The notes below the pieces were generated by a model. That model was given only the letters and a program-made list of their open reading frames with translations. It did no database searches and was not told where the DNA came from. The position numbers and the translations under genes are program-made. Below, piece by piece: positions 11,109 to 36,500 of a stretch of DNA of 64,000 nucleotides; the stretch's first letter is position 1, and every line of letters begins with the position of its first letter. The stretch is from assembly GCA_010909165.1 (NCBI GenBank), contig MU008193.1:543127-607126 (forward strand), read 5' to 3'. This DNA is from Anthoceros angustus. Taxonomy: Eukaryota > Plantae > Anthocerotophyta.

Positions 11109-12042
11109 AACATGCTATTTAGTGAAGGGCGTGATTATTCAACATGAGGGTTTTCTGCTTTTTATCTGCCGAAGGGGGTTTTTGATGGGTGTTGAATCCG
11201 ATGTTCACCACTTGTGTTGGAAAAGGGTGTCAGAAAGAAGGGTCAACAACTATACTAGACAGTGCTTGCCGGTGCGTGACATGTGGAGCGAGGGTTCTAG
11301 TTTACACCTATGCCGACTTTAGAGCCCATTTACAGCCCAAAATTGAGGGCCATGACTGCAGGTGAAGATGAGTACATTTCACGATGCCACCGCAAACAAT
11401 CGGGAAAACATGGTCCAACCAATGTCATAACTCTCCTATTTCAAGTTTCCCCACAGAGAACCCTTCCAAGCGGGGTGGTGGTGGTATGGTTCATACGAAT
11501 ACCTTCTGCCAGACATGACATTCATGGAATTCGCTGTGCAGGGCGCCGGCCAGCCGGCGCCCTGCACCCGCCTACCACAATGCCAGAAAGTGGCATGTCA
11601 TCTCCTATCCCTTGGTAGGATGTAGGAATCGATTTTTGAGACAAGAGGGCTGCTAGATGTGCGTCACCAACCCTCTGACATGATCCTATGTATAGTCATG
11701 TGACTGGCAGTGATCAATTACATCAAAGTGCTGGGTATGGATGCATTATTAGTGACTAGTATTGTGCAAGCCCTAAATGTGCACATGCTCTAAATGTGCA
11801 AATAGCACGGCAAAAGCCGGTCCCCTCAACTGTGCTAATGAATTTAGTACTAAAACCGTTCAGTGTTTGGAGCACGGGAGTTTCCAACGGCTAACATCTT
11901 GTAGAATATACAGGTCGTTTCCAACTTGCCCCATGGACAATGCGCTACAATGAACGTGTCGAATGTGTCTTGCGGGTTTTCCCTTCTCAAAACATAAAAT
12001 GTGGCTACGGCCTATGCGCACTTTTAATATTCGAAGTGCATT

Positions 12043-13190
12043 CTACTCTCCTTCTGAATTGACGCCGTCATCTTCGTTAGGTACGACATCATCACCGTCA
12101 TCTTCACTGTCCTCTGCGGCAGTTTGACTTGCTGGTTGTATGAAGCCCCGCAATTCATTCAGCTTGTCCTTGATCGCCTTCTTGTCTACCGCATATAGGT
12201 GTTTCCGAGAATTCAAGGTGAAACCATAATACAAGATGATGGTTTTCTGTACATATACTTCCTGAATATTTTTGGGGTTAAAAACCTTCGACCCCCTTTT
12301 TCCCGGTTTGTTGCTTGGCTGCTTGCCCTCCCCCCGAATTATATATTCTTCAACGTACCTACCCTCAAACGCATCTGTGTGCTCTGTTCAGTACCAGTGA
12401 ACAAGAAAGTGAGGCTTGCTTGCTTATGATGACAGTAACAAACCCACTGTCACCTTTGGCTTCTCTCGTAATTTTGAATTGGTGCTGGTAAGACAGGTTG
12501 TTTAATTTTTGACCGCCAGACAATGCGTGTCCACCTTGCCCTTGCCTCGACACAAACATATGACCAAGTCCGAACTTCGCCAATATCTTCACCTCTGGCT
12601 GAGGAGTGTACGCACTAATCAAAATCTCTGACAATGCAGGAAGAGTGTGAGCTTCCTTGTGTTTTAAGCTTTTTGAAAAGCATGAAAACATTTGGTCGAT
12701 TTGATCATGCTTATGCCCCACCAACAAAAACCCCACTTTCACCTTTTCAAACGTCCCTATGTCCACGAGCATGTTGAGATAGGCAAAAAGCAGTTGATTC
12801 TTGTTCTCTCTGCAGTGTTGTCCAATTGCAAATATAACACTTTCTGCAATACTCCTTTGTAGTTATGTATAACATCCTGGATGATGGTAATCGTGAGATT
12901 GGCATCATTCCGCAAGTTTGCATAATGCAAGTAAGCTCTTGCCTTAAACGTGTAATTGTGGATCATGCACCCAACCACATGAACCTGAAGTTCTTTGGCC
13001 ATCAAAGTAGATGAGGAATCTCCGTCTTCTTCTGGTCCATTCCATTGATTGAAAGTAGAAGGTACATATGTGGTTCTACATGACTCTTGCTCTTGTGTTT
13101 CGCCATCTTCAGTCGCTCCTGGTGTAACCGCAAACGATGGGCATCTAAAGCCGCTTGATATTTTTCTGTTTCAGAAAACATGCACACTTG
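12043..13190 (-). pseudogene. Outer element transposase, catalytic/C-terminal part (Sola-like, DUF7869-type DDD)
   Basis: SINGMDQKKT, LYLQLDNT, FLLVGHKHDQIDQMFS motifs; acceptor gaaacag before EKYQAALDAH. Confidence 0.8.
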
Positions 13191-14499
13191 TCAGTTACAT
13201 ATGAAGAGACATGCAGTTACATGTGAAGGATCCTCCTATGTTGGGACACTAAACTGCCTGGCCGACGTCCCGCCCCATACCAACGCAGGAGGAACCTTCA
13301 AGTTCCGTCTGAGCGCATTTGCACTCGTGGTCCGGTGGCGGTCCTGCGTCCCACCACAACCAATGCCTTCGGCTTTTGGTCTTAGAGGGGCGCCATCCGG
13401 CCGGCGCCCTACCACATGGATAAATTGAAGGGTGACCCCTGGGGTTCTTCGCTATCTGGGGCATTGGCCAGTTGCTATCCCACAACGGAAGTAACCTAAA
13501 GGTTCCGCCCTTGACTTGTTGTGGAGGTGGGGCGCCGGCCGGCTGGCGCCCCACCTCAGGGGGATCCTTAAAGTTCTGCCATAGGGTTCTTGGCCTTTGG
13601 GGGCGCCGACCGGCCGGCGTCTCACCACATGTACAGTTGGCCTCTTAGGGTTTCATCCCAAGGGTTTTGCATATGTGGGACGACGGTCGGCTGACGTCTC
13701 ACCCCATCCCATCATAGCAAGAACTGTAAGACTCGATTCTAGGGTTCTTGCCCATATGGCCCAGGGTTCAAAACAGCCATTCCCCACTAACATGCTAATC
13801 TTGGAAGGGGGTTAATATACAGTAAGGGGGTTTTCATCCAAATATCGTCGGAAGGGGGTTTGGGATGGGTCGCATTCTGCTTTGGGCAACATCGGTCAAA
13901 AGGCACGAAAATAAGGGTCGATAAGGGATGAAATTGACGTCCGAGCGGTGTCTCCATCACACAAAGGGTTAGGCGTGGTTCGCCATCGAATTTGGCATAT
14001 CGACCCATGCTTGCTTACCATAAGTACCGGAAGGACTAAAAGGGCAGGGTTGATGAGGCATCTAAATAAACAAGGTCTTTTGAAGACATTGCGGCAATCT
14101 TCACAGTCATCATTGGTAAAGAATGGTGCTTCTTCCGAACCGTCGTCCGGAACCCATAGTCTTTTGTTTTGGCAAGAAGGGGGCTCGCGTGGTGGGCGGC
14201 GCAACTATCGGGTTTCCACGATTTAGGATTTAGGCATGCGTCGGATGGGTTATATACCACGAACAAAATGTACAATACGCAGGCGTGCGGAAAAGCGGTT
14301 TCCATGCTACTAAGGATGGTGAAAAATGGCGGGCGCCGCCGCATCCATGTCGCCGACATCGCAACCTACGGCCGGGAAGTGACTCAACTTCTTCAACTTC
14401 CGATCACGAATGATAGCACCAACAGTGATTCCCTATCACTAACGCGAGCTCCCCACTTTGAGCCTAACACTTGGCGGTCACACCGGCGTCGAGTAAACC

Positions 14500-17400
14500 C
14501 TCTTGTCTACCGATGTCCACCGATGTTTGCCTCCACTTCATACATCTTTTCACTCATCTCCGAATTGACACCTTCCATGTCCAAGGGCCCGATGTCCGTC
14601 TTAAATCTTTGTCTTACGTGCACTTTGGTGGCTCGATGAAGCCCCGCAATTCATTCAACTTATCCTCGATCGCTTTTTGTCAATGGAATAGAGATGTTTA
14701 CGAATTCAAACGAACCCATAATACAAGATAGCGGTTTTATTGATGAAGACTTCTTGAACATTCTTGAAATTTGCCTTCCCACCCTTTTTCCTTCCAATCC
14801 CAATGTCTCGGTGGAATGGACAGAATCACATATTCTTCCACGTACGCCTTCATATGCATCTGTGCTCGATCTGCGATGAACGAAATGAGGCTCTTCCACA
14901 TCCAACCTCACGATTAACTTTCCCAATCCGAAAGGCCGATTATGCGATCACAAGGTATGCGATGAACATCCTTCCTTTATGTCTTTTACATCTCCATGCA
15001 ACGCCATTTCTGCCGCCGCTTCCCAACCGGTAAGGCCCCAAGTACATATCCCGTTGGGGGAGTTCTCTTAGCAACGCCTCCTCTAGGATAGCTTCATCGG
15101 GAACTTGGAGTGGTTGTGCTGTTTCTTCCGATTCTGCCCGAGAGAACCATTTCCACGGCTCTTCTAGTGCGAGCCCAATATTGTTCTCCACGATTACTGC
15201 GATTTCTTCTTGGTCCACCCAGAATGCTTCCCACCATCCATATTCTGTCCCAGTCACATATGGCCGCAGCTCCGACAGACCCGCTCTCAAATGTGCCACT
15301 CCTTGGTCGGAGATAACCCCGCCGACGTCCCTTTCTTGTCTCGAGAGCCGGCCGGCCGTCTGTTATGTCGTTGGAGGGACAAATTTCAAAAACTCCAACC
15401 GGCGGTTTCCCAATACATCGATGTCGAATATTGCTTGCTCCTAATCATCCACCCCATGGCCGGGTTTGTCTTCTCGTGATTTTAAAGGTCTGGAAAGATA
15501 AGTTGTTCAATTTTCTCACCGATGAATATGCTGGCGACCATCGCCTTGTCTAATCGGCCATACATATGACCGAAGTCCGGACCTCCGCAAAACTTTGATC
15601 TCCGGTGTAGGCGTATGCATGAACCAAGATGTCGGCCAACGCGGAAGAGTGTGTGCCTCCTTGTGCTTCAAGCTTTTGGAAAAGCAAGAGAACATCGTCG
15701 ATTTGGTCGTGAGTGTGCCCAACAAGGAGGAACCCAACCTTCACCTTGAAAAGTTCCCATATCAACTAGCATGTTCAAATCGCAAACAACAGCTGGTTCT
15801 TGTTTTCCGGCAAGTGTTGTCAAGCTGCAAATAGAGCACTTTGGGTAGCACTCCTTTATAATTAAGAATAACATCTTGAATAATCCGATTGTCGATTCGC
15901 ATCGTTCCTCAAATTGGCATAGTGCAAAACACTCTTGCTGCGTCGTATAATTGTGGATCATGCAACCCACTACGCAGATACACGGTCCTCATCAAGATTC
16001 TTTGGCCAACGCAGAAGTGTGGAATCTCTCTTCTTGGTCCATTCCGTCTATAGCGAGGAGCATGTACTTATCCGGTTCCTGTAACTCTTTTCACGGTGTT
16101 TTGCCATTTTTCCCGCTCCTCCTGCGGTACGCGGTGTGCCTCCAACGGCTGATATTTTTCTCGCACACCAAACACGTTCCAAGTGTCACATCCTTCCAAG
16201 TTTTCACGTTCCCAATTTCACACATACAAACACGCTTCTTCCACACCACAAGCGAAGATGAATCCATGAAACCCATTGCATACAACAAACCGATGTCGTG
16301 GACTATCACCTCTTCACACATACATTTACCATCTTCCCCAATCTAAAATCTACAAAACGCGTCCACCTTCTAGGTCATATATTATGGTTGGCGAGTTTGA
16401 AGGTGGATGGGGCCAGGGGCGCCCCGGCCCCTAAACTCGACCAATCAAACCTACAACCGGGGCCATCCATGAACAAGGACTGCGAGTTTCAAACATGGTA
16501 CTCGGGCAACTTCACAGCGGTCGGTCATCCGAGGGTGGGCGCGCCCGCCCACCTCCGACACTCAGTTTTCAACCATCCGCATACCACCGCTCATTCGGCG
16601 AACTATGGGATGAACTCGAAAAACTCCTCCCACCAGATGGGTTGTACTAGTGGTACAGTGATATCTACCTTGATCAACCTTCTGAGTTGTATTCCGAATG
16701 GTGGTCTTTAACCCTACACATATTGAGCAGGTCGAGAACCTGTTGGATTTGGGAATCTTCACTCGGCTGAAGTTAGATTTCCATAACTTCAAAAACCACG
16801 CGTACGTCACAAACTGCAGACCAGAGCTTTGACACTGCCGTTTGTACAATGACCATATCTCCAGCTTTGTATAGGTGTCAGGCAGGTTATACACCTGCAC
16901 GTTCGGAAGTCTTTCAGCCATGAACAGAAAAGCATTATCCATCCACGCTAGAGCACCAAGTGCATGACGGGACTTATGAATTGGGTTGGTTCGAACACTA
17001 TCCCACGGGGCATTCCTCATGACCCTCCCTTTCAGTTCCTCGTATCTGTTGTGCCCCATACAATATACTCTTCTGAAGGCCTTCACGCAGTGAGGAACCG
17101 ATCCCATAACATGCGTAAAACTCTTTCTTTGTTAGTTTGACTCCGGTCCCGATGTACGAGGCTTTGAAGAAATGTCTCCTGCTCTTGCCTGCACATTGTG
17201 AGGAACCTATATCGTTGCTCCTGAAGGCCTTGCTTGGTCAACCTCTGCATGCACATTTGGTTGCAACACGGTTTAAGAAAGTCTGCCGTCACCTTCTCCA
17301 GTTCACATTTTTGCAAAGACACCCCGCCCGTCAGCGCTTGTCCATGACTTTGTTGTCATCAATGTCTCACTTAAAGGCTTGGGATGGAATGTTCCGGATG

Positions 17401-17900
17401 CACCAGCGGAGGAGGGTGAACAAAGTCATCATCCCCATCCTCGATCCACGGATCATTTGCTTGTGGAAGAACTCGATCCTGCGGTCATCCTCGCATCGCT
17501 CCTTGGCGGAACAAACCACGACGGGATTACACCCCATCTCCCTTCCTTCCGTGTCTTCGCTGGATGCGACCCATCAATGGCGCATATAAGTTCAAGTTCA
17601 CGGGGTCATGGGCACCCCCGCGGAATGGAGAGGCGCTTGTCGATGGCGACGAGCATTACACCGCAATACCACTGTGCGGTGTGCATGAGATGGAATCCGC
17701 CACGGATGGGGTGGACTATTCGGCCACAACATTGTCTTCACCGCAAACAAGCTTTCTTGTTGAAGGCAAACTAACCTTCCGGAGTTCGGACTCGTTTTGT
17801 TGCTCATGATCGGAAGGGCGCGGGGCCCCATTCGATGCCATCCTTGGCTCCTCACAAGAGAGTCACCTACCATCCGGAAATCAAAGACCCCTCTTCCTCA
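14500..17900 (-). pseudogene. Inner element transposase (Sola-like, DUF7869-type), frameshifted; ends approximate
   Basis: QEQETFLQSLV, FLKLWKSNFSRVKIPKSNRFSTCSIC, AIDGMDQ, LYLQLDN, FLLVGHTHDQID. Confidence 0.8.
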
Positions 17901-18660
17901 CACTGCTCTGCGACAACATCAATGTCGGTCATTACATGGGTGAGCAGGCAGGAGGCGATGCAAACCCAACACTTGTTCTCAAGTACATGTTCCCCTTGAT
18001 CGCACAAACGGTGAGGAATGAACTTTGTGGACGAAAAACTCGACCTCTTCGACAAGCGATGTGTGTGTGGCGCGCAACATTGTCGCCCGAGGACTCCGCA
18101 CCTCTAACCTCGAAATATGGTCCTCACTCTTCACAGGCGTGGTATGCCATGACATAGGCGGCCGTGGTGAAGGTAAGGTGGAAATGCCATTATGAGCAAA
18201 TAAACCGAAAGATCTTCACCGGTAGAACTTGGCGGCGAGGCACACCGCCTCTTCATTGTTTTCTCGGCATTGGGGTTCACATGTACGGCTTTTGACTTAG
18301 GGTCCTATAAATGGTTTTCCATGTAAGCATTACCTTAATTGACATTTATGGTTAGGGTTGCGGCACATGTGTATGGCGTGACCGAGCAGGCGTCATACTT
18401 TCGATTCAAGTGGAGAGTAACCACGAGAGGCGAAAGTTCTTGACAGGAGCGGTGGCGGCCGCCTCGGCGGCTCTCGGCGAAGGACTTTTGGCGTCTCCAG
18501 ACGCGACTTCTCCACGCTGCGATCCTCCGCCATTTCCTCTTCGCGATTCACATAGTCTTGGTATGGCCCTCCCCTTCTGCTCGCAAATTTCCTTCAAGTT
18601 GTGCGACGATTCCTTCTTTGAATTGCGCTTCCTATGGCGATTGTATCTAATCTCTTGAGG

Positions 18661-19361
18661 ATGGCAAGCGGAAGGCAGTAGGAAGGAACGTGGAGAGAGG
18701 CGAGACATCGACCCGATGCCCAAAACCAAGAAATCCGGCCCGGCAGAAGAAGAAGGATGCGGCGGAATTTGGTGTGGATGTTGGAGCCGCGCCTACCTCC
18801 GGTGGAGGCGAGATACAACCAGCCATCAAGCACCAGCCACAGGTAATTTGTCAATTGGGCATGGGAAATCGGGCAGCCTAACATCCGGGAAGGCCGGCTA
18901 CGAAGGAGAAGGCTGAGGAGGAGACCGAGGAAGAGACCCCACAGGCAATCGGTGCAGCGCCTATTCCAACGCCATTTAACTATGAGGATCTATTGCCATC
19001 GTCGGTTGGGGAGCAAGGTGGAGGCCAATTGCTCGAGAAGGACGGATGTTGACACAGGATGAGGAGCCTTGGAGGAGAACAATTTTGGACTCCTCTATTG
19101 GCTGGTCGTAGGGTTCAAGGGGCCTTGCCAAACCAGAGCAAGGCTGGTGGGTTCTATGGGCGATCGTGGATATGGATGGACGAGCACATGTTTGGATCTT
19201 GTACAACAAAGCCTTTGGTATTTGATCGGATAAGCGAAGATGAAACCATGTACAAGGCTTATGAGGTCACCTACATGGCTTCCAAAGCAAGAAGTGCGAT
19301 CCTTCAAACTGGTGGAGGATTTGAAATGCTATCGTCGATAGTAAGTAAAACTTTGGAATAA
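18661..19361 (+). pseudogene. Inner element ORF X (unknown function)
   Basis: Starts MASGR; IPTPFNYED and CTTKPLVFDRISEDETMYK align with the outer ORF X. Confidence 0.6.
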
Positions 19362-19779
19362 GGTTTTCAAGCGATTGATGCAAATCGTTGTATGTTGGTT
19401 TCATGACTTGTGCCTTCTATCTTGCGTTTCCTCAATCCTTTTCTTTTTGCGGGATGCTCGAAGCTAGAGCACTAATTACGACCATATGCGGAAGATTACC
19501 GAATCGTCATCCGGCATAGGAGGGAAATGTCCTGGCAGTCGAGCCCGGCTTGACGGAATGTGCATGATGGGCTCACGGCCGGCCGCGCTAGTGAGCTCGG
19601 CCCATCGATGAGGAGGATGGGTGTATACCCGACGCCCTGGCCACTCGACGATGACGACTTTCGGAGGCGAGAGGATGGAAGGATGCTCCGTTCTGGACAT
19701 TCCTTTTCTGGCTCCTCCATGGGTACCCCGTGTAGGAGGAGGGTGAGGCGCCGGCCGCGCCTCCGAAGTCTGAGACACA

Positions 19780-22660
19780 GTTACAGACTCCCCGGTTGGG
19801 GTTCCCAAGGCTGCGAAGGGTTGGGCGCCGCCGGTGCGGTCTGTTGCATTGTTGCGGAAGAGACGGTGGGCGGGCGGTGGGCGGGCGGCGAGCTTCTATT
19901 GAGGCACCTCTGTCCGCCGATCCGAGAGTATGGAGACAGGGACTCGAGTGGGAGAGCAAGGCATGGTGGGCACGCCGCAACAGGGCATACCAGTCGCTCA
20001 CATAGCGAGGCTCCATCTGGGGGGAAGAGAAAGAAGAAATCCAGGAAGGAAACAGTGAGTGAAGCCCACCAGGATAACATAGCGACTGTCCATGTGCGGA
20101 CAGATGAGGAAAGACTTGAAGATGCCATCCGGGAATCAGACCCATTGACAATAATCAGGGACTCTGCCTATGCAAAGAAAGTTGTTCCGGAGACAGTACT
20201 GGTAAAGCTTGAGAATTTGAAGCCAGCATCTTATATTACACCAGATGCCCAAATCGGGAGGTGGAGGCATGGTCAAACTACCTAGCCCGAGTTATTTGAA
20301 GGAAGGATTGAAGAAGGGTTACGCCATTCATGCATGATTGACCCGGGAGTGCAACGATATTAGCAAGTTAATGGCGGTCGGGCCAAGAAATATATTATGG
20401 GTGTACTTGGGGAACCACACATATCTTGCTATGAAGCACTTGGCGATATTGCTCGAAGTCCGTTTTCAATATGTTGAAGCGCATGTATCTGTGGGCTTAC
20501 GGTGCACGAGATGAGAGTTCTTGCAACCGACCATAACACAATGTCGACAAGCGGAAGAAAATGTCTTTTATTGAAGCAGTAAGATATTTACGAGATGAGC
20601 TTCTTATTGCGTCGGGATGGAGTGCGATGACCATGTCATGGAAGTTCAATCTTTATAAGGTTCTTGGATTAATTGAAGATGATGAAGGTGCGAAGATGGC
20701 GTGTACAAGCGAACAAAGTGGACAACAGGACACACATAATGCATCTCAGCGGGAGGGCAAGGTATGGGATAATATTGATAAGATCTTTTCAAAGTGGGAA
20801 GCGAGTTACAGGCGGAAGAAGCACATACCGGCACCAAGAAAGGGAAGGAAGGGAAAAGGAAAGTCACAGATGATCCCAAACACGTGGAAGCGTGTATTTC
20901 AAGCCGAAAGACATGCTCATGAAACCACGGAAATCATTCCGGTATACCAGGGTGAATGTGGGCGTGATTCTTGTCACGGCAGGGAAGGTCTTGTGCATCC
21001 TCGATCTCAAAGGAATGGAGGACGAAATTACTTCAAGAAAGAAAGCGCATGTTATTCAAGTGGCCATGGCTAAACATCCGAGTGCTCATCTTCGAGGAAG
21101 TGAGGAAGGAATATCCTCTACACTCAACGACATGATTGCTCGATTTCAAACGGCTTTTCTTTGGGAAGGTGAGATCCGTCACCACGACAATGAGTCGCTT
21201 TGGTTTTCGTTTTACATTCAGGGCGGCGGTGGCGCCTATCTGGAGAATGGCACGATAGTGGGGGCGCCGGCCGGCCGCGCCTCCCCATCTTTGACGTGCG
21301 CGCGGCGCGCCGGCCGGCCGGCCGGCCGGCCGGCGCCGGCCGGCCGGCCGGCCGGCCGGCCGGCCGCCGGCGTGGCGCATGGCGCAAACCAAATTTGTCG
21401 ATGGAGGGTGTGAAGGCGCGGTCGGCGTCTTTCACACCCTCCTTCGCCATCGCTTGTTTGAATACAATAGGAATGTGGTGTCCCTGCTCTAACGTTTTTT
21501 CTTTCCCTGGCGTTCAGCAAATAAAGGATGTGGAGAATTTGCAAAAGCTGCCGGAGGATTTCAAGAACTTCATATTTGAGATTAACAACTGGAAGAGTCT
21601 TGAGGATGAGCAGCGCAATCGCCGACAAGGATTTGAAGATCGCCTGCTCATTGTTCCGTGGTCCGAGAAAGAGTGTTACTATCAAGTGGAAAAAGAAACA
21701 TTATGGAGATGCGGGATTCCTTGACGCGGCTTATACCCTTACGGTTATGGATGTCCCAAGAGGCTTTGACATTGGTCCTATGGATAGTCGGTTGGATGCG
21801 GGCATGATGAACACATTTTCCAAAGCTTCCGGAGAAGGCACGGCGGAAGAATTCGCTCATTGTCATGCACGGAGTGGAAGAAGCTCACCTTGTGAGAGAG
21901 TGCATGCGTGGATTATGTGGCAAGGGTGGAATGGTGTCCTTCGTTTGGGACAAAACAAACATGAGTAATGGCGGTGGATTTGAGACGATGGAGTACATAT
22001 GCTTGGTGTGAAGGAAGGCGGCTCGAAGACAAGGCGGCTATGGCGCCCAATATTACGTGAGGACTTTTAACAATGGACGATCCGTGATTGCACATGATAT
22101 CGTGGTGAAGAAGCGGTGTACATGTCTCAAGACAAAATGGTGGTGTGCCCTACCAAAGACCTCTCGGGTTGATGATGAAATTCATCAAAACATTCTCGAA
22201 AGAAGGAGATTGGATTACGGATGGTTGCGCGAAGTGGGACAACAACACCGGCAAGATTGCTCGGACGCAATTCTATTGCAATAGAGGTGACCTCATTGTC
22301 TGGTTATATCCCACAACGCATACATGGTTTCGAGGTTTTGCAGTGGAAAGAGGAGCTCACATTCGAGGCCCACCGGAGAGGAGCGGCTGATTCAGGCTAA
22401 AGAAGTTTGTATTAGCGAAAAAATTGTTTGGCTCGGTGGTTCCACTTAGTGCAAGGAGGATGAAAGCATAAGCAGGGACTTGCTAGAGGAAGGACAACAA
22501 ACCACAGATCATGTGCGATCGGGAGTGGTGGCGACAAGGACGAGGCGACAACGCAGAAGATGATGAAGCGAAGGCCACAGCGGTAGCGGCTTGAGTGTAG
22601 AATTGGAACGCATGCAACTGGCAGTTGTTTTAGATTCAGAAGCCACCCAAGCGCAGTATG
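19780..22660 (+). pseudogene. Inner element ParB-like + beta-class amino-methyltransferase gene, frameshifted; ends approximate
   Basis: VLG(G)NHT..AMKHL (ParB-like), YTLTVMDVPRG (motif IV, 21750-21764), LRLGQNKHE/W-D-K region, PYQRPLGLMMKFIKTFSKEGDWITDGC (motif X/I); intron about 21170-21517. Confidence 0.75.
21301..21372. repeat. (CCGG)n self-complementary GC array in the intron of the inner MTase gene
   Basis: cgcggcgcgccggccggccggccggccggccggcgccggccggccggccggccggccggccggccgccggc. Confidence 0.9.
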
Positions 22661-23018
22661 AGTCTCAGATCAGTCCGCCTGAGGGATCTTTGTAGAGGAA
22701 AGACTATATTCGAGGGACGGAAGAGGGGTTTTGAAACTGTGATATCAGGATTTTCTTTCATTACTTGTGTCAAAGCATAGCCGTGGGCAAGGATACTTCT
22801 GGGCTGGCGCCGGCCAGCCGGCGCCAGTAAAGCCCTCTTTGTTTTATGAATTGTGAAATATCAATGTTTTTTTCCCCTTTCGTATTTAGCATGGTGCTGT
22901 TGACGGAGGATTCGACGTATTTCGCATTTCCCGAACGGTGTCTTTTTTGTGAAGGGGGTTTCGGTTGTGCGGAAGGGGGTTTGTATATTAACCCCCTTCC
23001 AAGATTATCACGTTCACT

Positions 23019-23912
23019 CAAGAAAACCATTTCCATAAGTTCCCATGCATGTCAACCAGCCCCGTCGATTGAGGTAAGAATTACCTTGATCGGATTTGTG
23101 GACTGTGTTCCTAATAGTGCTCTTCAGATCTGCGCAGTGTGAACACGTGGAAAACCTGTTTGATTTCGGTATTTTCACTCTAGGGAAGTTGCTTTTCCAT
23201 AACTTCAAGAACCATGGATATTTCACATAATGGATCCCAGAGGTTTCGCATTGCCGCCTGTACATACTCCATATTTCCAACCTTGTGTATGTGTCGGGAA
23301 GGTTGAAGACTTCCACGTTCGGCTGCCGCTCGGCCATAAACAAAAATGTCTTGTCCATCCAGGATATGGCTCCAAGCGCACAAGAAGACCGAGGTTTGGG
23401 GTTAGGCCTGAAACCATCCCATGGGCATTCGAAATGACCCTGCTCTTCAGTTCCTCATATTTATTGTGCTCTATGCAATATACTCTTCTAAATGCCTTCA
23501 AGCAGCAGCGGATCGAAATGGCCCCCAATATGTGTGTGACTACTTTACCCCTTTCACATCCACCTCCCTCCACTTGAACCAAGGACTCTAGAAATGTCTC
23601 TTGCTCTGGCCTGCCCATCCTTAGAATCGCACTGCCTAAACTTCTTTTGTCACCGCAAGCACATTTGATTGCAACATGGTTTTCTAACCGTCCACCCACT
23701 CCTTCACTTTTCTTCAATGTGACACCAGCTACGCGTCTCCGTTGAGATGCAATGCTTTCCTCCCTTGACGCTGTCAAAGTCTCACTCAGCGGCTTCCGAT
23801 GGAACGACTGACGCGGTGCGGGTGTCTGGAAGTGGTCAGCTTCATCTTCATCCTCAAAGGGTTCGTACTGCTGAGGTGTGGGAGGCCTTCTAACGTGACC
23901 ACCATCAAACAA
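23019..23912 (-). pseudogene. Outer element transposase, N-terminal part
   Basis: EQETFLESLV, CLKAFRRVYC, FLKLWKSNFPRVKIPKSNRFSTCSHC; homologous to 16562-17322. Confidence 0.8.
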
Positions 23913-24833
23913 TCCCCTGCGTGCAACAGTGGTCCATCCACACGCAGTTGAGGGATGACAACTCTTGAATTCGGCTACGGCAGGTGTGTAGATGGGCTCC
24001 CCTCAATGGCTGCGTATAAATGCAAATTCCTGGGGGTGTGAGGCACACTCCAGACATTTGCAGATTTATGTCGACGCCTGCAGAGCCTACATATGTACAA
24101 CAAAGACTTAACAAGCTATCTGACGTGAACTTGGAGGAGCGTTCAAGATAGCGAGCCTCTTTCTACTGCGGACAATGTCTCCATTCCTTTGGAATTGCGA
24201 GGGGACCAGGTCCTCGACTTGAACCTCCTGCGCCCCAGGCATGGTCTTTACACAAGTTGCATACTGTATCATGAATGGTATGCAGGGAAATGACAATGGC
24301 GAAACAAGACCAACCTCATCTCCCGCAGGCGTGTGTGTCAAATGCAACATCGCACGCACTTATCACAATGCGCAACAGAGCAAAGCACAAGACTTTGCAG
24401 AGCAGCAGGTGGTGGCTGGCGGATATCAAAAGACTCCCTCCATGAGCTTTACTGAATGGCGTCGGGGCGGCCCTCGCATGCCCTGAGGGCTCCCTGCCTA
24501 AGTGGTTGATGGGATTGCCTCCAAACATGTGCGGACAATGAAGTGGTTGACGCGGGCGCATGTAATTTAACGGAAATCAGCATCATAAAGAAAGCCACCG
24601 CGCAAAAGCGGCGGGCCGACAAAGATTAAATAGTAAGCTGTGGTCAAAATTGACTTTAAGATAGCGGGATATTTAAGGAAATCATGATTTTCAAAACCAT
24701 TTCGGGTTATGGAAGGAAACCCTACATTTACAGGTCGTTTAACTTCAGTTCTCATTCCGGCCTCCTCTTTTCCAAACTTGAAGGCTTTCGTTTGCAAGGC
24801 CATCTACTTGCACATTTATGTCCGTGATACCAA

Positions 24834-24970
24834 GCGCAACTCCACCGCTGTGACTGCCGCAAGCTGGCTTTGGAGCGCAACACCACCGCTGTGACTGCCG
24901 CTAGCTCGCTTTGGAGCGCAAGTCCACCGCTGTGACTGCTGCAAGCTTGCTTTGCTGCAAGCGGCGCAAG
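24834..24970. repeat. About 40-bp tandem repeat, 3-4 copies, in the divergent intergenic region of the outer element
   Basis: ccaccgctgtgactgccgcaagctggctttggagcgcaa units. Confidence 0.8.
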
Positions 24971-25083
24971 TTCCCTGGGAGGCGGAGGATCTATGGAGCA
25001 TGTGAGTTTGCAGTCACCAAGGTTGTTTGTGCATCCCATTTGTGCTTACGCAGTGGGGTTGCCTGGAATTGCAGAGTTTGAAG

Positions 25084-25876
25084 ATGGCAAGCGGCAGGAG
25101 GAGCAAGAAGGACCAGCCCATGGAGGAAGATGACCTGCCCGCCATGCGGCAGAAGCCCAAGAAGACAAGAGGAGGCTCGAAGGCGAGAGCGGAACCCGTG
25201 CCCACGGCGGACATCGTCGAGGCACCTCCATCCAAGTCGCCGCTTGGAGACATCTTGCCATCCGAACCCATGCTCCAACAGCGGAGGGGTTGCCGGGCAG
25301 CGTATCCTCAGCGAAAATCAGTTCCACAAAGGCTGCTGGAGAACAAGGGACGAAGAAGGTGGGTAAGAGCGCGAAACAACCTATTCCAGTCCCGATTCCC
25401 TCACCTTACAGCTATGAGGAGACTGTCCATATCAGGCGTGTATCTGGGCAGCGCGACAATGTTGTTGTTGTGGAGAAGGATTGGATGCTTGTGCAGGATC
25501 CACAACCAACTGACGGCACTGCGCCTTTGACCCCTTTGTTGAAGTTGTGGATCATGGGGTATAGGTGGGCTCTGCCAAATCAGAGAGCAAGAGCGAGCTG
25601 GGTTGTTTAGGCTACACTGGACTTCAATGAAGGGGAGCCAGAGTTCACTTTTTTGTGCACCACAAAGGCATACCAGTTTGAGGAAGTTTCCTAGGATCCG
25701 CATTTGTACAAGTCTATTGTTCTTAGCCTGAAAGGGTTTCGTTGGAAGAAATGTGCACCTGCTGGCCTTGTTGAAGATTTCCGTGATTCCATGCGACAGC
25801 AGACAGTAAGGATTGTCCAGAATTGCATTCCTTCCCACATTTGTAGTTCCCATTTCTTCACATGTGAGAGTCATTA
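25084..25876 (+). pseudogene. Outer element ORF X (unknown function)
   Basis: MASGRRSKK start; IPSPYSYEE and CTTKAYQFEEVS.DPHLYK match the inner ORF X. Confidence 0.6.
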
Positions 25877-26334
25877 ACGTTGTGGATATGTTGTGCTACC
25901 ATCTTCCAAGCACCACTAGTTGCGAGGGCACTCATACGAGCTATCTGCGAAAAGATTACACAAACTATGAGGGCCCATAAGAGGGAGATTTCTATGCGTC
26001 GAGCCCAAGCCTCCATACGAAAAACTTGTGATATGGTGGAAGGTATGGAAGAAGAGCATGCGGAGAGTGAGCTTGGCCCATCAGACGAGGAAGATGGGGC
26101 TTTACCATTTGTTCAAGGGCATTCAGACAGCGAAGGATCTGGGGCGCAGGAATCGGACAAAGATGCTGAAGACCTCCCCAATGTTTTAATTCCGACTCCT
26201 TCCGTGATGGTTCCAACCATCCCATATGACCCGGATGCGCGGGTTGGGCGCCGGCCGGCCGGCGCCCCAGTTTATGCAAGCACCCCACGAGTTGCCAACG
26301 CCAGATCCGGACTGGTTTATCAGATTCAAGGAAG

Positions 26335-28533
26335 AACACGATAATTTTTGAAGGGGGTGAATAATCTCGAAGGGGGTTTTCCGCAAATAATCTCTGAAGG
26401 GGGTTTTTTGATGGGCCCTAAAATTTTGAAGGCATTGCGGAAAACAAAAAAAGGGTGTCACCCAAGAAAGTTACTACTTTCCATCCAAAGAATGTTTGTG
26501 TCGAATGGTGGTCGCAAACTCGAACCTAGGGAATGATGCAAAGTAGGAACGGTGAGGAAGGCCGCTCTCGCCGGGACGATCAGAACTCGCTTTGATGGAA
26601 ATGTGGTTTTGTTATGACACCACAAAAGCCACTGTGGTATTTCCTAACACGTAAACATCAAGAATGACTTACAACATTAACTCGGGACCCCGGAAAACGA
26701 GATTTCGCCACTCATCCCCGTAGTTCAATCCATCACATCACTTGGTCCAAATTCTCCTACATTGTCATCACTATCTTCGCCGACACTTTCACCGCAGTTG
26801 TATGAAGCCACGCAACTCGCAGAGCTTATCCCTTATCGCTTTTTGTCCACCGTGACACATTTCCATATGCTCAACACAAACCCATAATATGTGATGACTG
26901 CTTTCATCTACAAATACCTCCTGTATGTTTTTAGGTAATGGATCTTATTCCCTTTTTCCTAAGATTGGACCGATGGGTTACCACTGACTATGTGTTCCCC
27001 GCACATATCTCCTTCATACGCATCTATGTGCTCGGTCCGATACTAGTGGATAAGAAAGTGAGGTCGTGCGCTTAGCTTCACGTCAATGACCTCCCCAATC
27101 CGTAATGGCCCTATGCGTGTCCATATTGCACGGCACGCCGTAAACATCCCTCCTGGATTTCGCTATGTCCCCATTCATCCGTGCCATTTCGCTTGCCTTC
27201 CCGCATTTTGATATGCCCCAAATACATATCACGCCGTGGAGGTCCTCAATAATGCCTCATCTAGCAAAGCTTCATCCGCACTTGAAGTGGTCAGTCAGAT
27301 GATCCACTTCGCACGTGAAAACCACTTCCCGACGTAGCACTAGCCCAATGTTATTCTCCACAATGATAGCAATCTCCTTCCGTCCACCCAAAGGCTTCCC
27401 ACCACTTATACTCTTCAACAAATACCTATGGACGCAAATCTTTAACCCTTCCCGCAAATGGGCCACACCTTCCATCGGTGATAGGATACACCGCTGCCCC
27501 TTCTTGTCCCCCTAGCTTCACTAGATGCAGAGGAGCAGAGGGCCACACCTGGCCTCCCCAACACGCCATGCCTGCCCATGGGCGCCGGCGCCTCCCCTAG
27601 CACACCGCCCATGGGCGCCGGCGCCTCCCCAACACGCCATGCCTGCCCATGGGCGCCGGCCGGCGCCTCCCCTAGCACACCGCCCATGGGCGCCGGCCGC
27701 CTCCTAGGTCGCCTTCTAGAAAATAAATATTTAGCGCCTCAAGAGTATTACAACCATGGACTGTTGGTTTAGTGTTTGGGAAATAAGTGTAGTAACGCAT
27801 AGGTTTCGTGTTCAAGACTCGTGCCTCCTCAATAATTCAATTTTGTTGATTTTAAGGATGCTTGCATGGGCGCATGGGCAACTAACTTTGTTCATTTTAA
27901 GGACGCTGGCATTGCCTTAAAGCCCAAGTGGTTGCATTGACTACCAGAAGGTTGAAGACCACGATTGCGACCTTTTGGATGAGGGTCAGCACCCTGAGTG
28001 GCGGCGACACCGCCGGACCGGGCCCAAGAATGATACTATTGAAGACGAGCAAGCAATGGAGGAGAACGACAACTTCGAGGCGGAGGATATGGACCGCCTC
28101 CGAATATGGCGGTGGTACTTGACTCCGCGCCAAGAAGGCATGGATGAGTCGCCAGCCGCACTCTTGAATGGCTATTGTCGATGACCACTTCCTCCTTCAG
28201 TTGTTTGTTGCAATGTTCTCACGACACCGAAATGAGACTCCGCTAGTATGTGATTGTTTTCATTGTGTTCCACCACTTGAAAGTAAAAGTTTTCTTGTAA
28301 TAAACATATGAAAATGGCAGCCCTCTATGCATTCTACTAAACGCAAATGGGCCACACCCCATCGCGTTCTAGCTTCTGTAGACTTGAAAGTGCATCTTTA
28401 TCAAAGGTATGACCTCGTAAAGGGTGTGTGCATTATCAAAGTAGGCACATATGTCGCTCTAGGTAAGGTGTTCTTCGTGACAAGGGGGTGTTCGGCCAAG
28501 GTCGTGATATCCCCCTTCAAAAATTATCGTGTT
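26335..28533. mobile_element. Internally deleted non-autonomous member of the same DNA transposon family, 2,199 bp
   Basis: TIR AACACGATAATTTTTGAAGGGGG at both ends; 4-bp TSD GAAG at 26331-26334 and 28534-28537; keeps the transposase 3' tail at left and the MTase 3' tail (LKAQVV) at right. Confidence 0.9.
27545..27700. repeat. GC-rich tandem repeat (about 30-bp units containing ATGGGCGCCGGC) in the deleted element
   Basis: Alternating gcctccccaacacgccatgcctgcccatgggcgccggc and gcctcccctagcacaccgcccatgggcgccggc units. Confidence 0.8.
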
Positions 28534-31500
28534 GAAGGTGCAGGAGCCGCTGGGGTCGGCCACCATCCTAAACCTTCCACCACACAGGCGTAAGGGAGCA
28601 GATGGCAAAGGGTCGGCAGCAGTTCGTGTCAAGAAGATGACATGGTGGATGCAGGGATGGTGGAGGTCGAAGAGGAGGGCGCCGGCCGACGCCTCCTCAC
28701 CCTTCAGCCCCGAAGGAGCCGCCTCAGTGGTGCTCAAGGGCAAGGGAAGTGCAGAAGACCTGTACTACGGGATGGAGAATTTGGAAGGAAAAGTAAAAGG
28801 CAAAGAAGGTGGAAGAGAAGATGCCATAGGAGGGGACATTACTACGCTCATATTCAAACCGACGAGGAAAGGTTGGAAGAGGCTATGAGGGATGCATCCA
28901 TTGACTGCTTAAGGGATTCTCGTGACATACCAAGAAGGTGGTGCAGAAACATAGTGAAGTTGGAGAACTTGAGACCCAAAAGACATATTACTCCGGACGC
29001 CGCAGATCGAGGGTTGATGAGGCTTGGGCAAACTATCTTGCCCGTGTTATAGCGAAGGGCTGATAGAAGAGGGAGTTCGCCTCTTGTGTATGATTGATCC
29101 GAGCGAGTGATGATCTCAAAGCAATGGATCGAAGCAATGGCGCAGCAAAGAAGTATGTCATGGGAGTTCTTGGTGGTAACCACACCCACGCAGCTATGAA
29201 GCACTTATCGATATCTCACCCGAAAGAAGCGTTCCAATATGTTGAAGCACATGTGTATTGTGGGCTTACTGCATGAGATGCGGTGCTTGCAATGTATCAC
29301 AATATGATGTCCGATCAAGAAAGAAGATGAACTTTATAGAGCAAGTCGTATTTAAGGGACGAGTTGATCATCGCAAAGAGGGAAGAAGTGCAAATGACCA
29401 TGTCCCGAAATACAACTGCATAAAGTCCTAGGTTTGATTGAAGACGATGAAGGGCGGGAGGACGACGTACAAGGTAACAAAGTGGACAATCGGACCCACA
29501 TTCGTGTATTGCTAAGGTGATGGGAAGGTGTGGGAGAATGTGGACAAGATTTTTTCCAAATGGGAAGTGGAGAGCTTCCAATGTAAGAAACACGCTTGGA
29601 CAAGCAAGAAAGGGAAAGGCAAGCTATGACCAAGCAAGTTGATAGTGTATACGCTGCCTAGAGACATGTTGGCCAAGCCTCGAAATCTTTTCGTGGAATA
29701 CCAGCTTGAGAGTGTGGCCAAGAATACCGATAAGCGCCACCGAGAAGGTGTTAATGATCGATAGATCAAGGGATGGAGGAAGAGATCACACTGGAAAAAT
29801 TTCATATCATACAAGTAGCAATGGTGAAGCATCTCGCTTCGTCATTTGAAGAGGTGCGCGAGGAGTATCCTTTACATTCTACGGACAATATGCTAGCACG
29901 ATTCCAAATTTCTCCGAAAGGTATGTCCGTTTTTTTTTCGTCATTGACAGCAGGGATCGATGCCGGCCCGGGCCGCGCCTGGCACCGCCCCGGTCCCCGC
30001 ATATGTTTCAATGAAGTGCTTACCGGTGCCCCTCACTTCCTTCATATGGGTTGAAGGTGCAGGTCAGTTTGCCGGCCATCCTAAACCCTTCCACCACAGG
30101 CGTAAGGGAGCAGATGGCAAAGGGGTCAGCGCAGTTCGTGCCCAAGAAGAGGACATGGTGGATGCAGGGGATGTGGGTATGGAGGCCGAAGAGGAGGGGC
30201 GCCGGCCGACGCCTCCTCACTTCAGCCCCGAATGTAGCCTCAAGTGGCGTGTGCTCAAGGGCAAGGGAAGTGCAGGAAGCAGCCGCACCCACAGCGGGGA
30301 TGGAGAATTTGGAAGGAAAAGTAAAAAGGCAAAGAAGGGTGGAAGAGAAGATGCCATAGGAGGGGACATTACTACAGTTCATATTCAAACTGACGAGGAA
30401 AGGTTGGAAGAGTGAGGGATGCATCCATTGACGCTTAAGGGATTCTCGCATACCAAGAAGGTGGTGCAGAAACGTTAGTGAAGTTGGAGAACTTGAGACC
30501 AAGACATATTACCCGGACGCCGCAGATCGGAGGGTTGATGAGGCTTGGGCAAACTATCTTGCCCGTGTTATAGCGAAGGCGATAGAAGAGGGAGTTCGCC
30601 TGTGTATGATTGATCCGAGCGAGTGATGATCTCGAACGGATCGAAGCAATGGCGAGCAAAGAAGTATGTCATGGGAGTTCTTGGTGGTAACCACACCCAC
30701 GCAGCTATGAAGCACTTATCGATATCTCACCCGAAAGAAGCGTTCCAATATGTTGAAGCACATGTGTATTGTGGGCTTATCAGGTATGAGATGGTGCTTG
30801 CAATGTATCACAATATGATGTCCGATCAAGAAAGAAGATGAACTTTATAGAGCAAGTCGTATTTAAGGGACGAGTTGATCATCGCAAAGAGGGAAGAAGT
30901 GCAAATGACCATGTCCCGAAATACAACTGCATAAAGTCCTAGGTTTGATTGAAGACGATGAAGGGCGGGACGACATGCACAAGGTAACAAAGTGGACAAT
31001 CGGACCCACATTTTGTGTATACAAGGTGATGGGAAGGTGTGGAGAATGTGATTTTTTCCAAATGGGAAGTGGAGAGCTCTGCACGTAAGAAACACCTGGG
31101 ACAAGCAAGAAAGGGAAAGGCAAGCTATGACCAAGCAAGTTGATAGTGTATACGCTGCCTAGAGACATGTTGGCCAAGCCCGGAAATCTTTTCGTGGAAT
31201 ACCAATTGGAGAGTGTGGGCAGCAAATACCGATAAGCGCCACTGAGAAGGTGTTAACCTGGATAGATCCAAGGGGATGGAGGATGAGATCACACTGAAAA
31301 ATTTCATATCATACAAGTAGCAATGGTGAAGCATCTACCGTCATTTGAAGAGGTGCGCGAGGAGTATCCTTTACATTCTACGGACAATATGCTAGCACGA
31401 TTCCAAATGTTCCTCGAAAGGTATGTCCGCAGTTTTTTTTTCGTTGAGTAGGACCGGGATCCGTGGCGCCGCCGGGCGCCCCGGCACCGCCGCCCTCAGA

Positions 31501-33161
31501 TGTTTCAATGAAGTGCTTCGCCGTCGGGTGCCGCCTCCGCTTCATCCAACGCGAAGGAGGGGCGGCCACGGCCTCTCGCCTTAACGACTAACGATCGTCC
31601 GCAGCAATTGAAAGACATCAAGTGTCGATAAAACTCCCATGACTTCCAAAGATTTTATTTTCGAGATAAACAATTGGAAAGGGCTTGAAGAGAGCAGACT
31701 TGACAAGGACCGGAGGAAGGTCTTGAGGTTTTCAAGGCCCATCAACGAGAGAGGTACCAAATCGAAAGTCGTGATGTGCAAGATATGCGTGGTTTTCTCA
31801 GGGCAAGGTAATACACACTCCTTATCATGGATGTGCCCCGTGGTCTTAACATTGGACCTATGGACAAGAGGGTGGATAAGCAAATGATGGATTCTATCCT
31901 CCAAAGCTTTGTTGAGAAGACCACTAGCGATGAACTGTGGATGATTGTGATGCATGGAGTGGAGGAGGCACATACAGTTAGAGAAGCAATGAGAAAATGG
32001 AGTAGGAAAGGGGGCTTGGTGTTGTTCGTATGGGACAAGACAAACATGAACAATGACAGGGGTGGATTTGAGACTGTGGAATACATAACTATCGATTGGG
32101 GTGTGAAGGATGGGAGCAACAAAGGACAGAATTGCAATGCTACCAAATGCTATGCAGGGAACTTTCAACAATGGAAGGTCCGTCATTGCTCATGACACAG
32201 TTGTCAAAAAACAGGTTTACATGTCACATGACAAGTTGGTGGTCTGCCCTTACTAGAGACCACTTGGGTTGATGATGAAACTCATTAAAACCTTCTCCAA
32301 AGAGGGAGATTGGGTTCTGGATGCATGCTCTGGGGGCGGCACAACTCTATTAGCAGCGTTACTTACAGGAAGGAATTGTATCGCCATCGAGGCTGACTTG
32401 AGATGTGCAGGTTATATTTCACAAAGAATTCATGGATTTGAGGTGCTCCATGAAGCTTGAGGAGTTGAATTTTGAAGCCCACCGAGAGGACTTGCATGCC
32501 CGGCAAAGGAGGTTTGCATTAGCGAAGGACTTGAAAGCACAAGTGGTTTCTTTGAGTGCCCGCCGAATAAGAGCAGATCGATAATTTGTTGGAGGCTGGC
32601 CAACAAACACTGAATAACGCTGGCGCCGGGGCGATGGTAATGAAGACATGATGGGAACGAGGACTCGAGGGCTTTGGTTGAAATCGACAATTTCGATGAG
32701 GAAGAACTTGAGCGGATACGAAACTTGGCTGTAGTTTATGATTCCGTGTCAGCGCAAGCACCGATTGAGTCACAAGTTAGCCTGCACGTAGACGTTTGTA
32801 GTGTGAACCGTCCGTGCTAGTGATAGTGGTCAATTTTTGGCGGAACCTAAATGTGGATGGTCTCCAACTTGCTTGAGACGCATTTACCCATACCTAATTT
32901 TTTGTGATTACTAGGCCTCTTGTCAGTGTGAAAATGGATCATCGTACAAAACGCACTACCTATGACCACTAAAGCGCGGCCGCCGCCTTTACCCTTTCTT
33001 CCGCTGCTTACAAACCGCGATTCACAGGAATCATTGTCCATGGTATGGGACACTGAAACCCGAAAAAACACGGTTTTTGGAACCATGTGTTATTAGTGAA
33101 GGAGGTTTCGTTCAACCAAAAGGGGGTTCGGATATTCACCCCCTTCACTGAATAGCATGTT

Positions 33162-33848
33162 AGACATGCTGTTGGTACATTGATATATTTAAGAAACTTT
33201 ACTAGACCAGACATATCTTTTGAAGTCAGTGCAGTCTCACAATTTTTGGAGAATCCTGGAAGACAACATTGGCAATGCGTCAAACGCATATTCAGGTATC
33301 TCAAAGGGACTATGCACACAAGACTGATGTATAAGCATACACCCGGCATATCCAAGTTAAACTTAAGAGCACATGCTGATGCTGATTATGCTGGAGACCC
33401 AGACAGCCGAAAATCTGTATCTGGCTACGTCTTACTACTTGGAGGAGCTCCCATCTCATGGTCAAGTAAGAAACAACCAACTATTGCTTTGTCAAGCACT
33501 GAGTCAGAGTATAGGGTTCTAACCCCAGTCTCCAAAGATATAGTCTGGAGTAGGTTAGCATTGAGCGAGCTTAACTATCCTCAAAATGAGCCCACACCTT
33601 TGTTCAGTGATAGTCAGGGAGCCATAGCCTTAGCTAGAAACCCTGTCTTCCACTCAAGAACTAAGCATATAGCAGTTGAGTATCATTACATTCGCGAAAT
33701 GCTAGAAAATAAGACCATATATATAAATTACATCCAAACTCAGGAAAATCCAGCCAATTTATTAACCAAGTCATTGGGCAGGGACTTACATCTCAAACAC
33801 ATGAAAAGTTTAGGAATACATGAGGTCAAGATTAACTTAGCTAGCTAG
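33162..33848 (+). pseudogene. Copia RT C-terminus and RNase H
   Basis: TRPDISFEVSAVSQF, ADADYAGDPDSRKSVSG, WSSKKQPTIALSSTESEY, DSQGAI...HSRTKHI. Confidence 0.95.
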
Positions 33849-35598: not shown

Positions 35599-35808
35599 TT
35601 TAAGTAGTTATTTAATTAGTTGCTCTAGGTAGTTAGTTGTTATATTAGTTGCAACTACCTAGTGGTTACAACAACTTATGGGTGTAACCACTTAACCACT
35701 TAACCACTTAACCACCTAACCACCTAGCCTATAAAAAGGCTTGTACTCTTTACTCTTAATTCAATTGTATTGTAGCACTTTGTGCCTAAGAGCTATTGAT
35801 TCTCATCA
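35599..35808 (+). repeat. Copia 3' LTR, lacking the first about 74 bp and with no visible PPT
   Basis: Matches 4614-4798, has two extra TTAACCAC-type units, ends TCATCA followed by TSD CTATT. Confidence 0.9.
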
Positions 35809-36185
35809 CTATTGAGTCTTATTCACTCAGATGTGTGTAGACCTTTTAACTATTCTTCTTTTCGAGGTTTCTGGTATTTTGTTACTTTCGTGATGATTGT
35901 ACGTACGGAGTTGCACAGCCACGTATGCCCTAACTCAGGGACGACATCATAGGCCACAACCATTACATCTTGCTACTCCGTGTTATTTATCCATTATATC
36001 ATGTTTATATTCATTTATATTTGCTTGTGTTGATGTGAGTGTTGCGGTTGCTGCAGCCCTTCAGGCATGACATCCATACATGAGGTCATTATAACCCCAC
36101 AATTAAACAGCCTTTGGACTAATCAATGCTTCGATGGGGTGCCACCCATCCCCGAGTTTCATGGTCCTATAGGACCACCAGGCAC

Positions 36186-36500
36186 AAAAAAATCTTGCCC
36201 TTGTAAGAGCCATGTGGAGCTACTCCTGATCCAAAATCCTTGCCCTCGTAAGAGTCCTATGGGGCTACTCCAGATAAAAATTAGTTGCCCTTGCAAGAGC
36301 CCTGTGGAGCTACTCCTGATCCAAAAATCTTGCCCCTGTAAGAGTCCTATGGGACTCTTGCAAGAGCAAGTTGCAAGGTCCATTGGGGAGTACTCCTAAT
36401 AAAAAATCTTGCCGTTGTAAGAGCCATGTGGGGCTACTGCTGATAAAAAATCTTGCCCTTGTAAGACCCCTATGGGGGTAATCCTCATAAAAATCCTTGC
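36186..36500. repeat. About 45-bp degenerate tandem repeat, 6-7 copies
   Basis: aaaaatcttgcccttgtaagagccatgtggagctactcctgat units. Confidence 0.85.

Follow-up and report, generated by a model that had tools for sequence, protein, structure and literature searches.

Three nested copies of one transposon family

The window analysed here is a 64,000-nt stretch of Anthoceros angustus DNA (GCA_010909165.1, contig MU008193.1, positions 543,127-607,126, forward strand). It contains three related elements, designated A, B and C, which are very probably dead, nested copies of one cut-and-paste transposon family of the Sola1 superfamily, the autonomous members of which pair a transposase with a methyltransferase accessory gene. 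Homologous left ends were detected by a repeat scan at 11109, 13789 and 26335, and the bounds of each element were set by reading the ends and comparing them with blastn. All three elements start with AAC and end with GTT (termini AACATG/AACACG/AACGTG...GTT), carry terminal inverted repeats (TIRs), and are flanked by target site duplications (TSDs) (Table 1). The 4-bp TSD is perfect in 3/3 elements, for which the chance is about (1/256)^3. An earlier reading of this DNA, hereafter the original prediction, had described A and B as full-length elements bounded by AAC...GTT TIRs and a 4-bp TSD, and had postulated a third, deleted copy keeping the tails of both outer genes. The comparison of ends bears out both claims, C being the deleted copy, and the TIRs and TSDs agree with the proposed cut-and-paste type of DNA transposon.

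B and C both lie inside A, B within the transposase gene of A. After removal of B and C, the sequence of A itself amounts to 10,620 bp. B, a diverged full-length copy, measures 9,226 bp, and C, at 2,199 bp, is internally deleted and non-autonomous. The nucleotide identity between A and B is about 70% and is confined to the coding blocks. In both, the transposase is encoded on the minus strand and a long accessory gene on the plus strand, with a PF01555 domain at the end of the latter; an autonomous member is composed of two transcription units facing away from each other. C holds the 3′ tail of the transposase gene (about 27165-27700) and the last ~240 bp of the methyltransferase gene (27919-28155 against A 32534-32776, 62% identity, E=1e-12). 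Stops and frameshifts break every reading frame of A, B and C, and all three copies are therefore dead.

Each of B and C was inserted into a copy of the same family, which may reflect chance or a preference for the element's own sequence. A short tandem repeat, consisting of three copies of a 41-bp unit, is also present inside A at 24833-24955.

Table 1. Elements, genes and candidate sites in the window (positions are those of the window).
Feature	Position	Strand	Description
Element A	11109-33161		TIRs 11109-11130 and 33140-33161 (22 bp, 21/22); TSD AGAC, 11105-11108 and 33162-33165
Element B	13789-23014		TIRs 13789-13821 and 22982-23014 (33 bp, ~31/33, ~94%); TSD CACT, 13785-13788 and 23015-23018
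Element C	26335-28533		TIRs 26335-26357 and 28511-28533 (23/23); TSD GAAG, 26331-26334 and 28534-28537
Transposase of A, 3′ (C-terminal) part	12128-13788	minus	DUF7869 core with ENKN...VGHKHDQIDQMFSCF motif; frameshifted
Transposase of A, 5′ (N-terminal) part	23019-24002	minus	Separated from the remainder by the insertion of B
Transposase of B	14605-17425	minus	Pseudogene with many frameshifts and stops
Accessory gene of A	28594-32800	plus	PF01555 at 32257-32457; pseudogene
Accessory gene of B	19554-22700	plus	Domain order as in A; pseudogene
Candidate ORF X region of A	25389-25957	plus	Weak conservation, collinear with B 18882-19516
GAAGGGGGTT sites, A	11123/11171; 33098/33119/33137		
GAAGGGGGTT sites, B	13804/13823/13851; 22951/22972/22990		Example stretch 13804-13860, plus strand
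GAAGGGGGTT sites, C	26350/26369/26396; 28509		
GC-rich palindrome sites (~10)	11542, 13396, 13531, 13602, 21263-21344, 22806, 26247, 27652-27701, 28678, 30198		Example 26247-26266

The transposase

The minus-strand gene had been predicted to encode a transposase, and the DUF7869/Sola profile check agrees. Two pieces of the A gene match Pfam DUF7869, with E=1.6e-28 (12368-12862) and E=5e-13 (12760-13170), and jointly span positions 6-181 of the 192 positions of the profile. The match of the B transposase is weaker than that of A. An intron is likely at about 13.1-13.7 kb in the A gene. The N-terminal part of the A transposase carries a conserved F..lW...FP.vKIPKSNRFSTCS.C..LKSTI block.

For the superfamily assignment, the DUF7869 match was combined with a comparison of blocks (recognized by eye), TSD and termini with one reference family, Sola1-1_Ec32 of the brown alga Ectocarpus. 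Two blocks are common to the window transposase and Sola1-1_Ec32: F..lW...FP.lK.....F..C..C..LKSTI in the N-terminal half and ENKN...VGH(T/K)H.QIDQ.FSCF.K in the catalytic core. Judged from these sequences, the family is filed under the Sola1 superfamily because of the DUF7869 match, the termini with the 4-bp TSD and the shared blocks. Where Ec32 has its second acidic residue (DNT), A, a frameshifted pseudogene, has GQH, which says nothing of the active family. A protein search with a 189-aa transposase piece returned no match, the query being limited by the broken open reading frames (ORFs) and the length filter.

The methyltransferase domain

The domain at the end of the accessory gene matches PF01555 (N6_N4_Mtase) in A with E=2.4e-11, scoring 44.5 bits against a curated cut-off of 26.7. 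In the matching piece (32257-32457), which reads ...RPLGLMMKLIKTFSKEGDWVLDACSGGGTT...RNCIAIEAD, motif I is accompanied by a QKP-like block of canonical form. When 1.84 billion representative proteins were scanned with the N-terminal half (127 aa) of the A methyltransferase domain, one true relative, P0002, was identified, and a further search added P0003 and P0004. These three, all located on contigs of sequencing run SRR33208241, are the only intact relatives of the methyltransferase domain found in the protein searches, and the family is thus extremely rare in public protein data. PF01555 is matched by P0002 with E=3e-12 and by P0004 with E=4e-13. The N-terminal region of the accessory protein has relatives in P0006 (contig L004, SRR33208241) and P0005 (contig L005, from the sister run SRR33208242).

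In the PDB, P0002 matches the sequences of M.RsrI, TTHA0409, MboIIA and CcrM; searches of the PDB with the window pieces gave noise only. Foldseek with the AlphaFold model of P0003, of which the core alone is confident (mean predicted local distance difference test score, pLDDT, 48), yielded 38 significant matches, and 38/38 are beta-class N6A/N4C DNA methyltransferases. Alignments of the family with phage enzymes place the motifs in the permuted order IV ... QKP ... I. By its modelled fold and its S-adenosylmethionine (SAM)-binding motifs, the domain is assigned to the beta-class N6A/N4C-type amino-methyltransferases, in agreement with the earlier claim of an amino-methyltransferase with motif IV preceding motif I.

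Motif IV departs from the canonical (D/N/S)PP(Y/F/W). A and B have DVPRG here, and P0002-P0004, L004 and L005 have DLPRG, an arginine replacing the aromatic residue in every member with a readable motif. As motif I, A has VLDACSGGGTT; the homologues show (V/I)(L/V/I)D(M/G)CSGSG, and in B the motif is degraded. Within the phage and plasmid collections searched, the closest full-length relatives are stand-alone phage enzymes with 22-27% identity over >80% of the domain and E down to 4e-9; the search of the plasmid collection returned C-terminal motif I matches only. The family resembles the phage "DLPYG" enzymes (Pseudomonas phage HU1, Ralstonia phage RS-CA1, cyanophage S-RIM12) in having L at the second motif IV position and a C(M/S)GSG motif I. 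When aligned with the HU1 and RS-CA1 enzymes, D(L/V)PRG of the family falls on DLPYG of the phages, in which the first proline is already L. The phage enzymes stand alone, are about 245-260 aa long and keep the motif IV tyrosine, whereas the transposon family has the arginine and long N-terminal extensions. Such a conserved Y-to-R change suggests that catalysis may be unusual or lost, and poses a sharp biochemical question as to whether the enzyme is active, retargeted or inactive.

The accessory gene as part of the element

The accessory product starts with a low-complexity N-terminal stretch, continues with a conserved N-terminal domain and a helical middle region, and ends in the methyltransferase domain. 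The landmarks in A are GGNHTHAA (30683-30706), DVPRG (31830-31844), the QKP-like block near 32257 and DACSGGGTT (32320-32346); in B, the motif IV DVPRG lies at 21750-21764. The 5′ half of the A gene, encoding the N-terminal, ParB-like part, is tandemly duplicated over 1.5 kb (about 29000-30500 versus 30500-32000, 89% identical). The proportions of nonsynonymous (pN) and synonymous (pS) differences between the two repeats are 0.03 and 0.05, low in both cases, which is what a duplication arising in a dead element would be expected to show.

An intron is likely in the B accessory gene at about 21180-21540. Among the related contigs, L005 is the spliced form of L002: an intron of ~220 nt is gone between the exons ...SFANV and RVRSVGNLHQLP.... 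Transcription and splicing of the family in another organism follow from this, as does the presence of introns in the accessory gene. Contamination, or an insert of bacterial or viral origin, was considered and rejected, since the TIRs, the TSDs, the nesting in a copia element and the intron seen in L002/L005 argue against it.

Selection was examined by Nei-Gojobori counts of A versus B in the true frame and in two wrong frames. In the true frame, the two halves of the methyltransferase gave pN of 0.22 and 0.13 with pS of 0.75; the core of the N-terminal domain, pN 0.27 and pS 0.69; and the middle part with the next exon, pN 0.22-0.23 and pS 0.78-0.84. The corresponding values for the transposase are pN 0.17-0.18 and pS 0.65-0.79, with the N-terminal part of A (23019-24002) at 0.18 and 0.79. 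No such contrast of pN and pS was obtained in the two wrong frames. While A and B diverged, purifying selection acted on the whole accessory gene with the same strength as on the transposase, and the accessory protein accordingly served the transposon. The gene is part of the element, since it lies within the TIRs, occupies the same place and orientation in two lineages, leaves its tail in C along with that of the transposase, and was under purifying selection. The view that the methyltransferase belongs to the mobile unit and is not a bystander is thereby upheld. Selection at the strength seen for the transposase, across lineages with saturated synonymous divergence, argues that the success of the element needs the accessory gene.

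Two genes or three

A three-gene layout had been proposed, with an ORF X on the plus strand between the transposase and the methyltransferase gene. The minus-strand transposase and the plus-strand methyltransferase gene stand; a separate ORF X is matched by weak collinear similarities only. In the interval that separates the two genes, hardly any alignment of A with B is possible. The candidate region shows three weak collinear plus-strand tblastn matches between A and B (E=1e-3 to 1e-2), its differences are frame-specific (pN ~0.4 against pS 0.7-0.85, frame 0), and it has no Pfam match. These matches, with pN lower than pS, would fit three separate genes, ORF X then encoding a fast-evolving accessory protein in its own right, much like PAG1 of red-algal Plavaka, since the red-algal cassettes likewise have a first gene of unknown function. 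We regard this as somewhat improbable, because the identity of the region is near the alignment background (~50%), no Pfam domain is matched, and contig L004 has a long low-complexity frame directly upstream of the conserved N-terminal domain, the frame changing between them, so that the region maybe represents 5′ exons. Instead of forming a third gene, ORF X may thus belong to the accessory gene as its upstream exons. In contig L001, the ORFs lying upstream of the methyltransferase resembled ORF X by eye, an idea that was rejected because they have no tblastn match to the window.

The N-terminal domain and the ParB label

The conserved N-terminal domain shows the motif order VKLENLRP ... ANYLARVI ... 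MIDP ... KYVMGVLGGNHTHAAMKHL ... YVEAHV.GLT..EM..LA..HN ... F...VRY.R. By eye, this order is similar to that of ParB/Srx (strand, helix, strand with GxxHRxxA box, strand, (E/H)N helix), with T or S at the box arginine. The original prediction called the domain ParB-like and proposed a ParB/Srx profile check, which did not yield a significant match. The ParB tests ran on fragments, since every available copy is frameshifted. Pfam, run on five pieces and on a further one from contig L004, and NCBIfam gave no ParB match at E<=10 on any piece; no ParB was returned by profile searches of the PDB or by tblastn against phages at E<=10; and hhalign against P1 ParB assigned a probability of 0.3%. In PHROGs, the best match was to phrog_723, "ParB-like partition protein", over the GGNHTHAA stretch (E=0.11-0.15). 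For P0006, which lacks the first strands of the domain, AlphaFold gave a model with a pLDDT of 48, and the Foldseek result of this model is meaningless. From its motif order, the ParB-like label is plausible, and it gains from the ParB-like domain described by the Ectocarpus authors for their Sola1 accessory protein. Mycobacteriophage "DNA methylase" genes were also considered as ParB fusions and rejected, ParB not being present in them.

Candidate cis-elements

Exact copies of the subterminal repeat GAAGGGGGTT number 8, where 0.24 would be expected, and every one of them lies at an element end. With one-mismatch copies included, there are three at 5/6 ends and one at the right end of C. These repeats are presumed to be candidate transposase-binding sites.

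The second candidate is a GC-rich palindrome of 20-36 bp with the core GGCGCCGGCC|GGCCGGCGCC. It gave 21 pattern matches against 0.04 expected, and 21/21 are inside A, B and C, the remaining 42 kb having 0; the related contigs L001-L005 also have none. The palindromes are at non-homologous positions in A versus B, most of them in apparent introns or non-coding parts, and many have extra self-complementary arms that vary by site. By analogy with the inverted-repeat arrays of red-algal Plavaka, they may be binding sites of the accessory protein. Alternatively, they may be small palindromic insertions.

Relation to known systems

This architecture, of which the original prediction knew no earlier description, had already been reported. 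The Ectocarpus family Sola1-1_Ec32 (21.5 kb, AACCG-CGGTT termini, 4-bp TSD; Genome Biol 2025, PMC12477816) has an accessory gene on the strand opposite to the transposase, encoding a DNA-binding domain that is ParB-like plus an N4C/N6A DNA methyltransferase, and its authors proposed that the accessory protein binds and modifies the element's own sequence (PMC12477816). The window family shares with it the Sola1 transposase, the 4-bp TSD, the AAC...GTT termini and the opposite-strand methyltransferase gene. It differs in having TIRs of 22-33 bp and a length of ~9-10.6 kb, whereas Sola1-1_Ec32 has imperfect TIRs of 282 bp and extends over 21.5 kb. The two accessory proteins were compared by description.

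Related cargo is also carried by red-algal transposons. In the Bostrychia genome, Plavaka, Mutator and Zisupton elements contain a cassette of PAG1 (unknown), PAG2 (PF01555 and SET) and PAG3 (ParB-like and 2-oxoglutarate (2OG) oxygenase), and inverted-repeat arrays beside the ParB-like gene of the Plavaka elements were proposed as ParB sites (Petroll et al. 2025; bioRxiv 10.1101/2025.02.11.637652). Like these, the window family is a TIR transposon with a PF01555 methyltransferase as cargo. Unlike the PAG cassette, in which the methyltransferase and the ParB-like domain are on separate fusions in elements of other superfamilies, it has a single protein in a Sola1 element. The window therefore contains a new family of a Sola1 and methyltransferase architecture that is already known.

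The same fold class is found in host genes. N4CMT of bdelloids and MpDN4MT1 of Marchantia are PF01555 enzymes, N4CMT structures appearing at Foldseek ranks 24-34; both are host genes, whereas the window methyltransferase is transposon cargo. Apart from the common fold, nothing specific was found to connect the window methyltransferase with MpDN4MT1 or N4CMT, no direct sequence comparison having been made. In the "chlorophyte-type Dam" family of algae, a ParB-HTH (helix-turn-helix) is fused to an adenine methyltransferase (Iyer et al., BioEssays 2016, dated 2015 in PMC; PMC4738411). The ParB-type domain is N-terminal to the methyltransferase there, as in the window, where the ParB label is given by motif only. 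That family belongs to Group 2, with M.EcoKI/M.TaqI as prototypes, and is not described as circularly permuted, whereas the window enzyme is of beta type.

Transposon-encoded DNA-marking enzymes are rare in eukaryotes. Beyond the 2025 descriptions, the present analysis adds the evidence of selection, the family-wide replacement of the motif IV aromatic residue and the candidate cis-sites.

Proposed role of the accessory protein

A role in marking the transposon can be proposed for the accessory protein. The protein would bind the DNA of the element itself and methylate it, candidate binding sites being the GAAGGGGGTT repeats near the ends or the GC-rich palindromes specific to the elements. 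The mark would distinguish the element's copies from other DNA, and would serve either in the timing or limitation of transposition, as Dam methylation does for IS10 and Tn5, or against silencing by the host. It would be N4-methylcytosine (4mC) or N6-methyladenine (6mA), the latter being likelier because motif IV begins with D; the motif reads D(L/V)PRG instead of DPPY/SPPY.

Several observations weigh against this picture of an autonomous, self-marking element. An intact copy is present in 0/3 cases in the window, so none can be active here. Characterised amino-methyltransferases have in motif IV an aromatic residue (Y/F/W) stacking on the flipped base, and this residue is missing here. None of Pfam, NCBIfam, the PDB and hhalign shows significant homology to ParB, the phrog_723 match being the best. 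The GC-rich palindromes, for their part, contain no adenine.

The lack of the aromatic residue can also be read to mean that the protein is a pseudo-enzyme, its domain being kept for DNA binding, SAM binding or scaffolding, such as bridging of the ends or recruitment of host factors, with no methyl mark deposited. All members have D(L/V)PRG with arginine at the aromatic position, and inactive methyltransferase domains are retained in DIRS1 and METTL14 (PMC4738411). Nevertheless, purifying selection has conserved motif I (DxCSGSG), the YQKP block and, in motif IV, both D and P, and an L in place of the first proline is already tolerated by the closest phage relatives (DLPYG). We consider a pseudo-enzyme unlikely, though it deserves to be kept in mind. 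A passenger gene, captured from the host or a bacterium in the manner of Pack-type elements and of no use to the transposon, is highly improbable: unrelated host genes are frequent in giant algal transposons (PMC12477816), yet this gene is found in an unchanged position and orientation in two lineages with differences at ~75% of their synonymous sites, its pN/pS is equal to the transposase value, by which the passenger reading is largely refuted, and a Sola1 transposase and a methyltransferase gene are also paired in Ectocarpus (PMC12477816).

The self-marking role proposed above can be extended to a more ambitious scheme, in which the pairing of Sola1 and the accessory gene would be ancient and obligatory (brown alga, this genome and a third organism), the D(L/V)PRG methyltransferase would have a non-canonical activity or target, and the palindromes would be parS-like loading sites for the N-terminal domain, together making up a self-recognition system through which a eukaryotic transposon marks its DNA. 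This combination is a long shot. Were it true and the host a land plant, the element would be the first of its kind there and a plausible donor of plant amino-methyltransferases.

Host context and neighbouring sequence

A interrupts a Ty1/copia element within its reverse transcriptase (RVT_2 at 10489-11055, E=8e-42). The copia frame apparently resumes right after the TSD of A, at 33180-33845, a piece that has no Pfam match. Upstream of the copia reverse transcriptase lies a tandem duplication of ~1.7 kb (5637-7582 versus 7574-9295, 94% identical; region 5560-9295). A direct repeat of ~200 bp, 4614-4798 and 35600-35808, is 87% identical over a distance of 31 kb and flanks the copia element and the nested transposons; the two copies could be remnants of long terminal repeats. 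Searches of the window for tRNA genes and against Rfam gave no match. Further repeats lie at 2555-2684 and 36164-36493, being (TAGGC)n and a 45-bp unit present ~6 times, respectively as listed. At 54337-54402 (plus strand), the window encodes DAAQFGSRAHRLRSMWTN, a stretch with no Pfam match that is 77% identical over 22 aa (E=5e-9) to an ORF at 3156-3386 of the related contig L003, where this ORF lies directly downstream of the methyltransferase gene.

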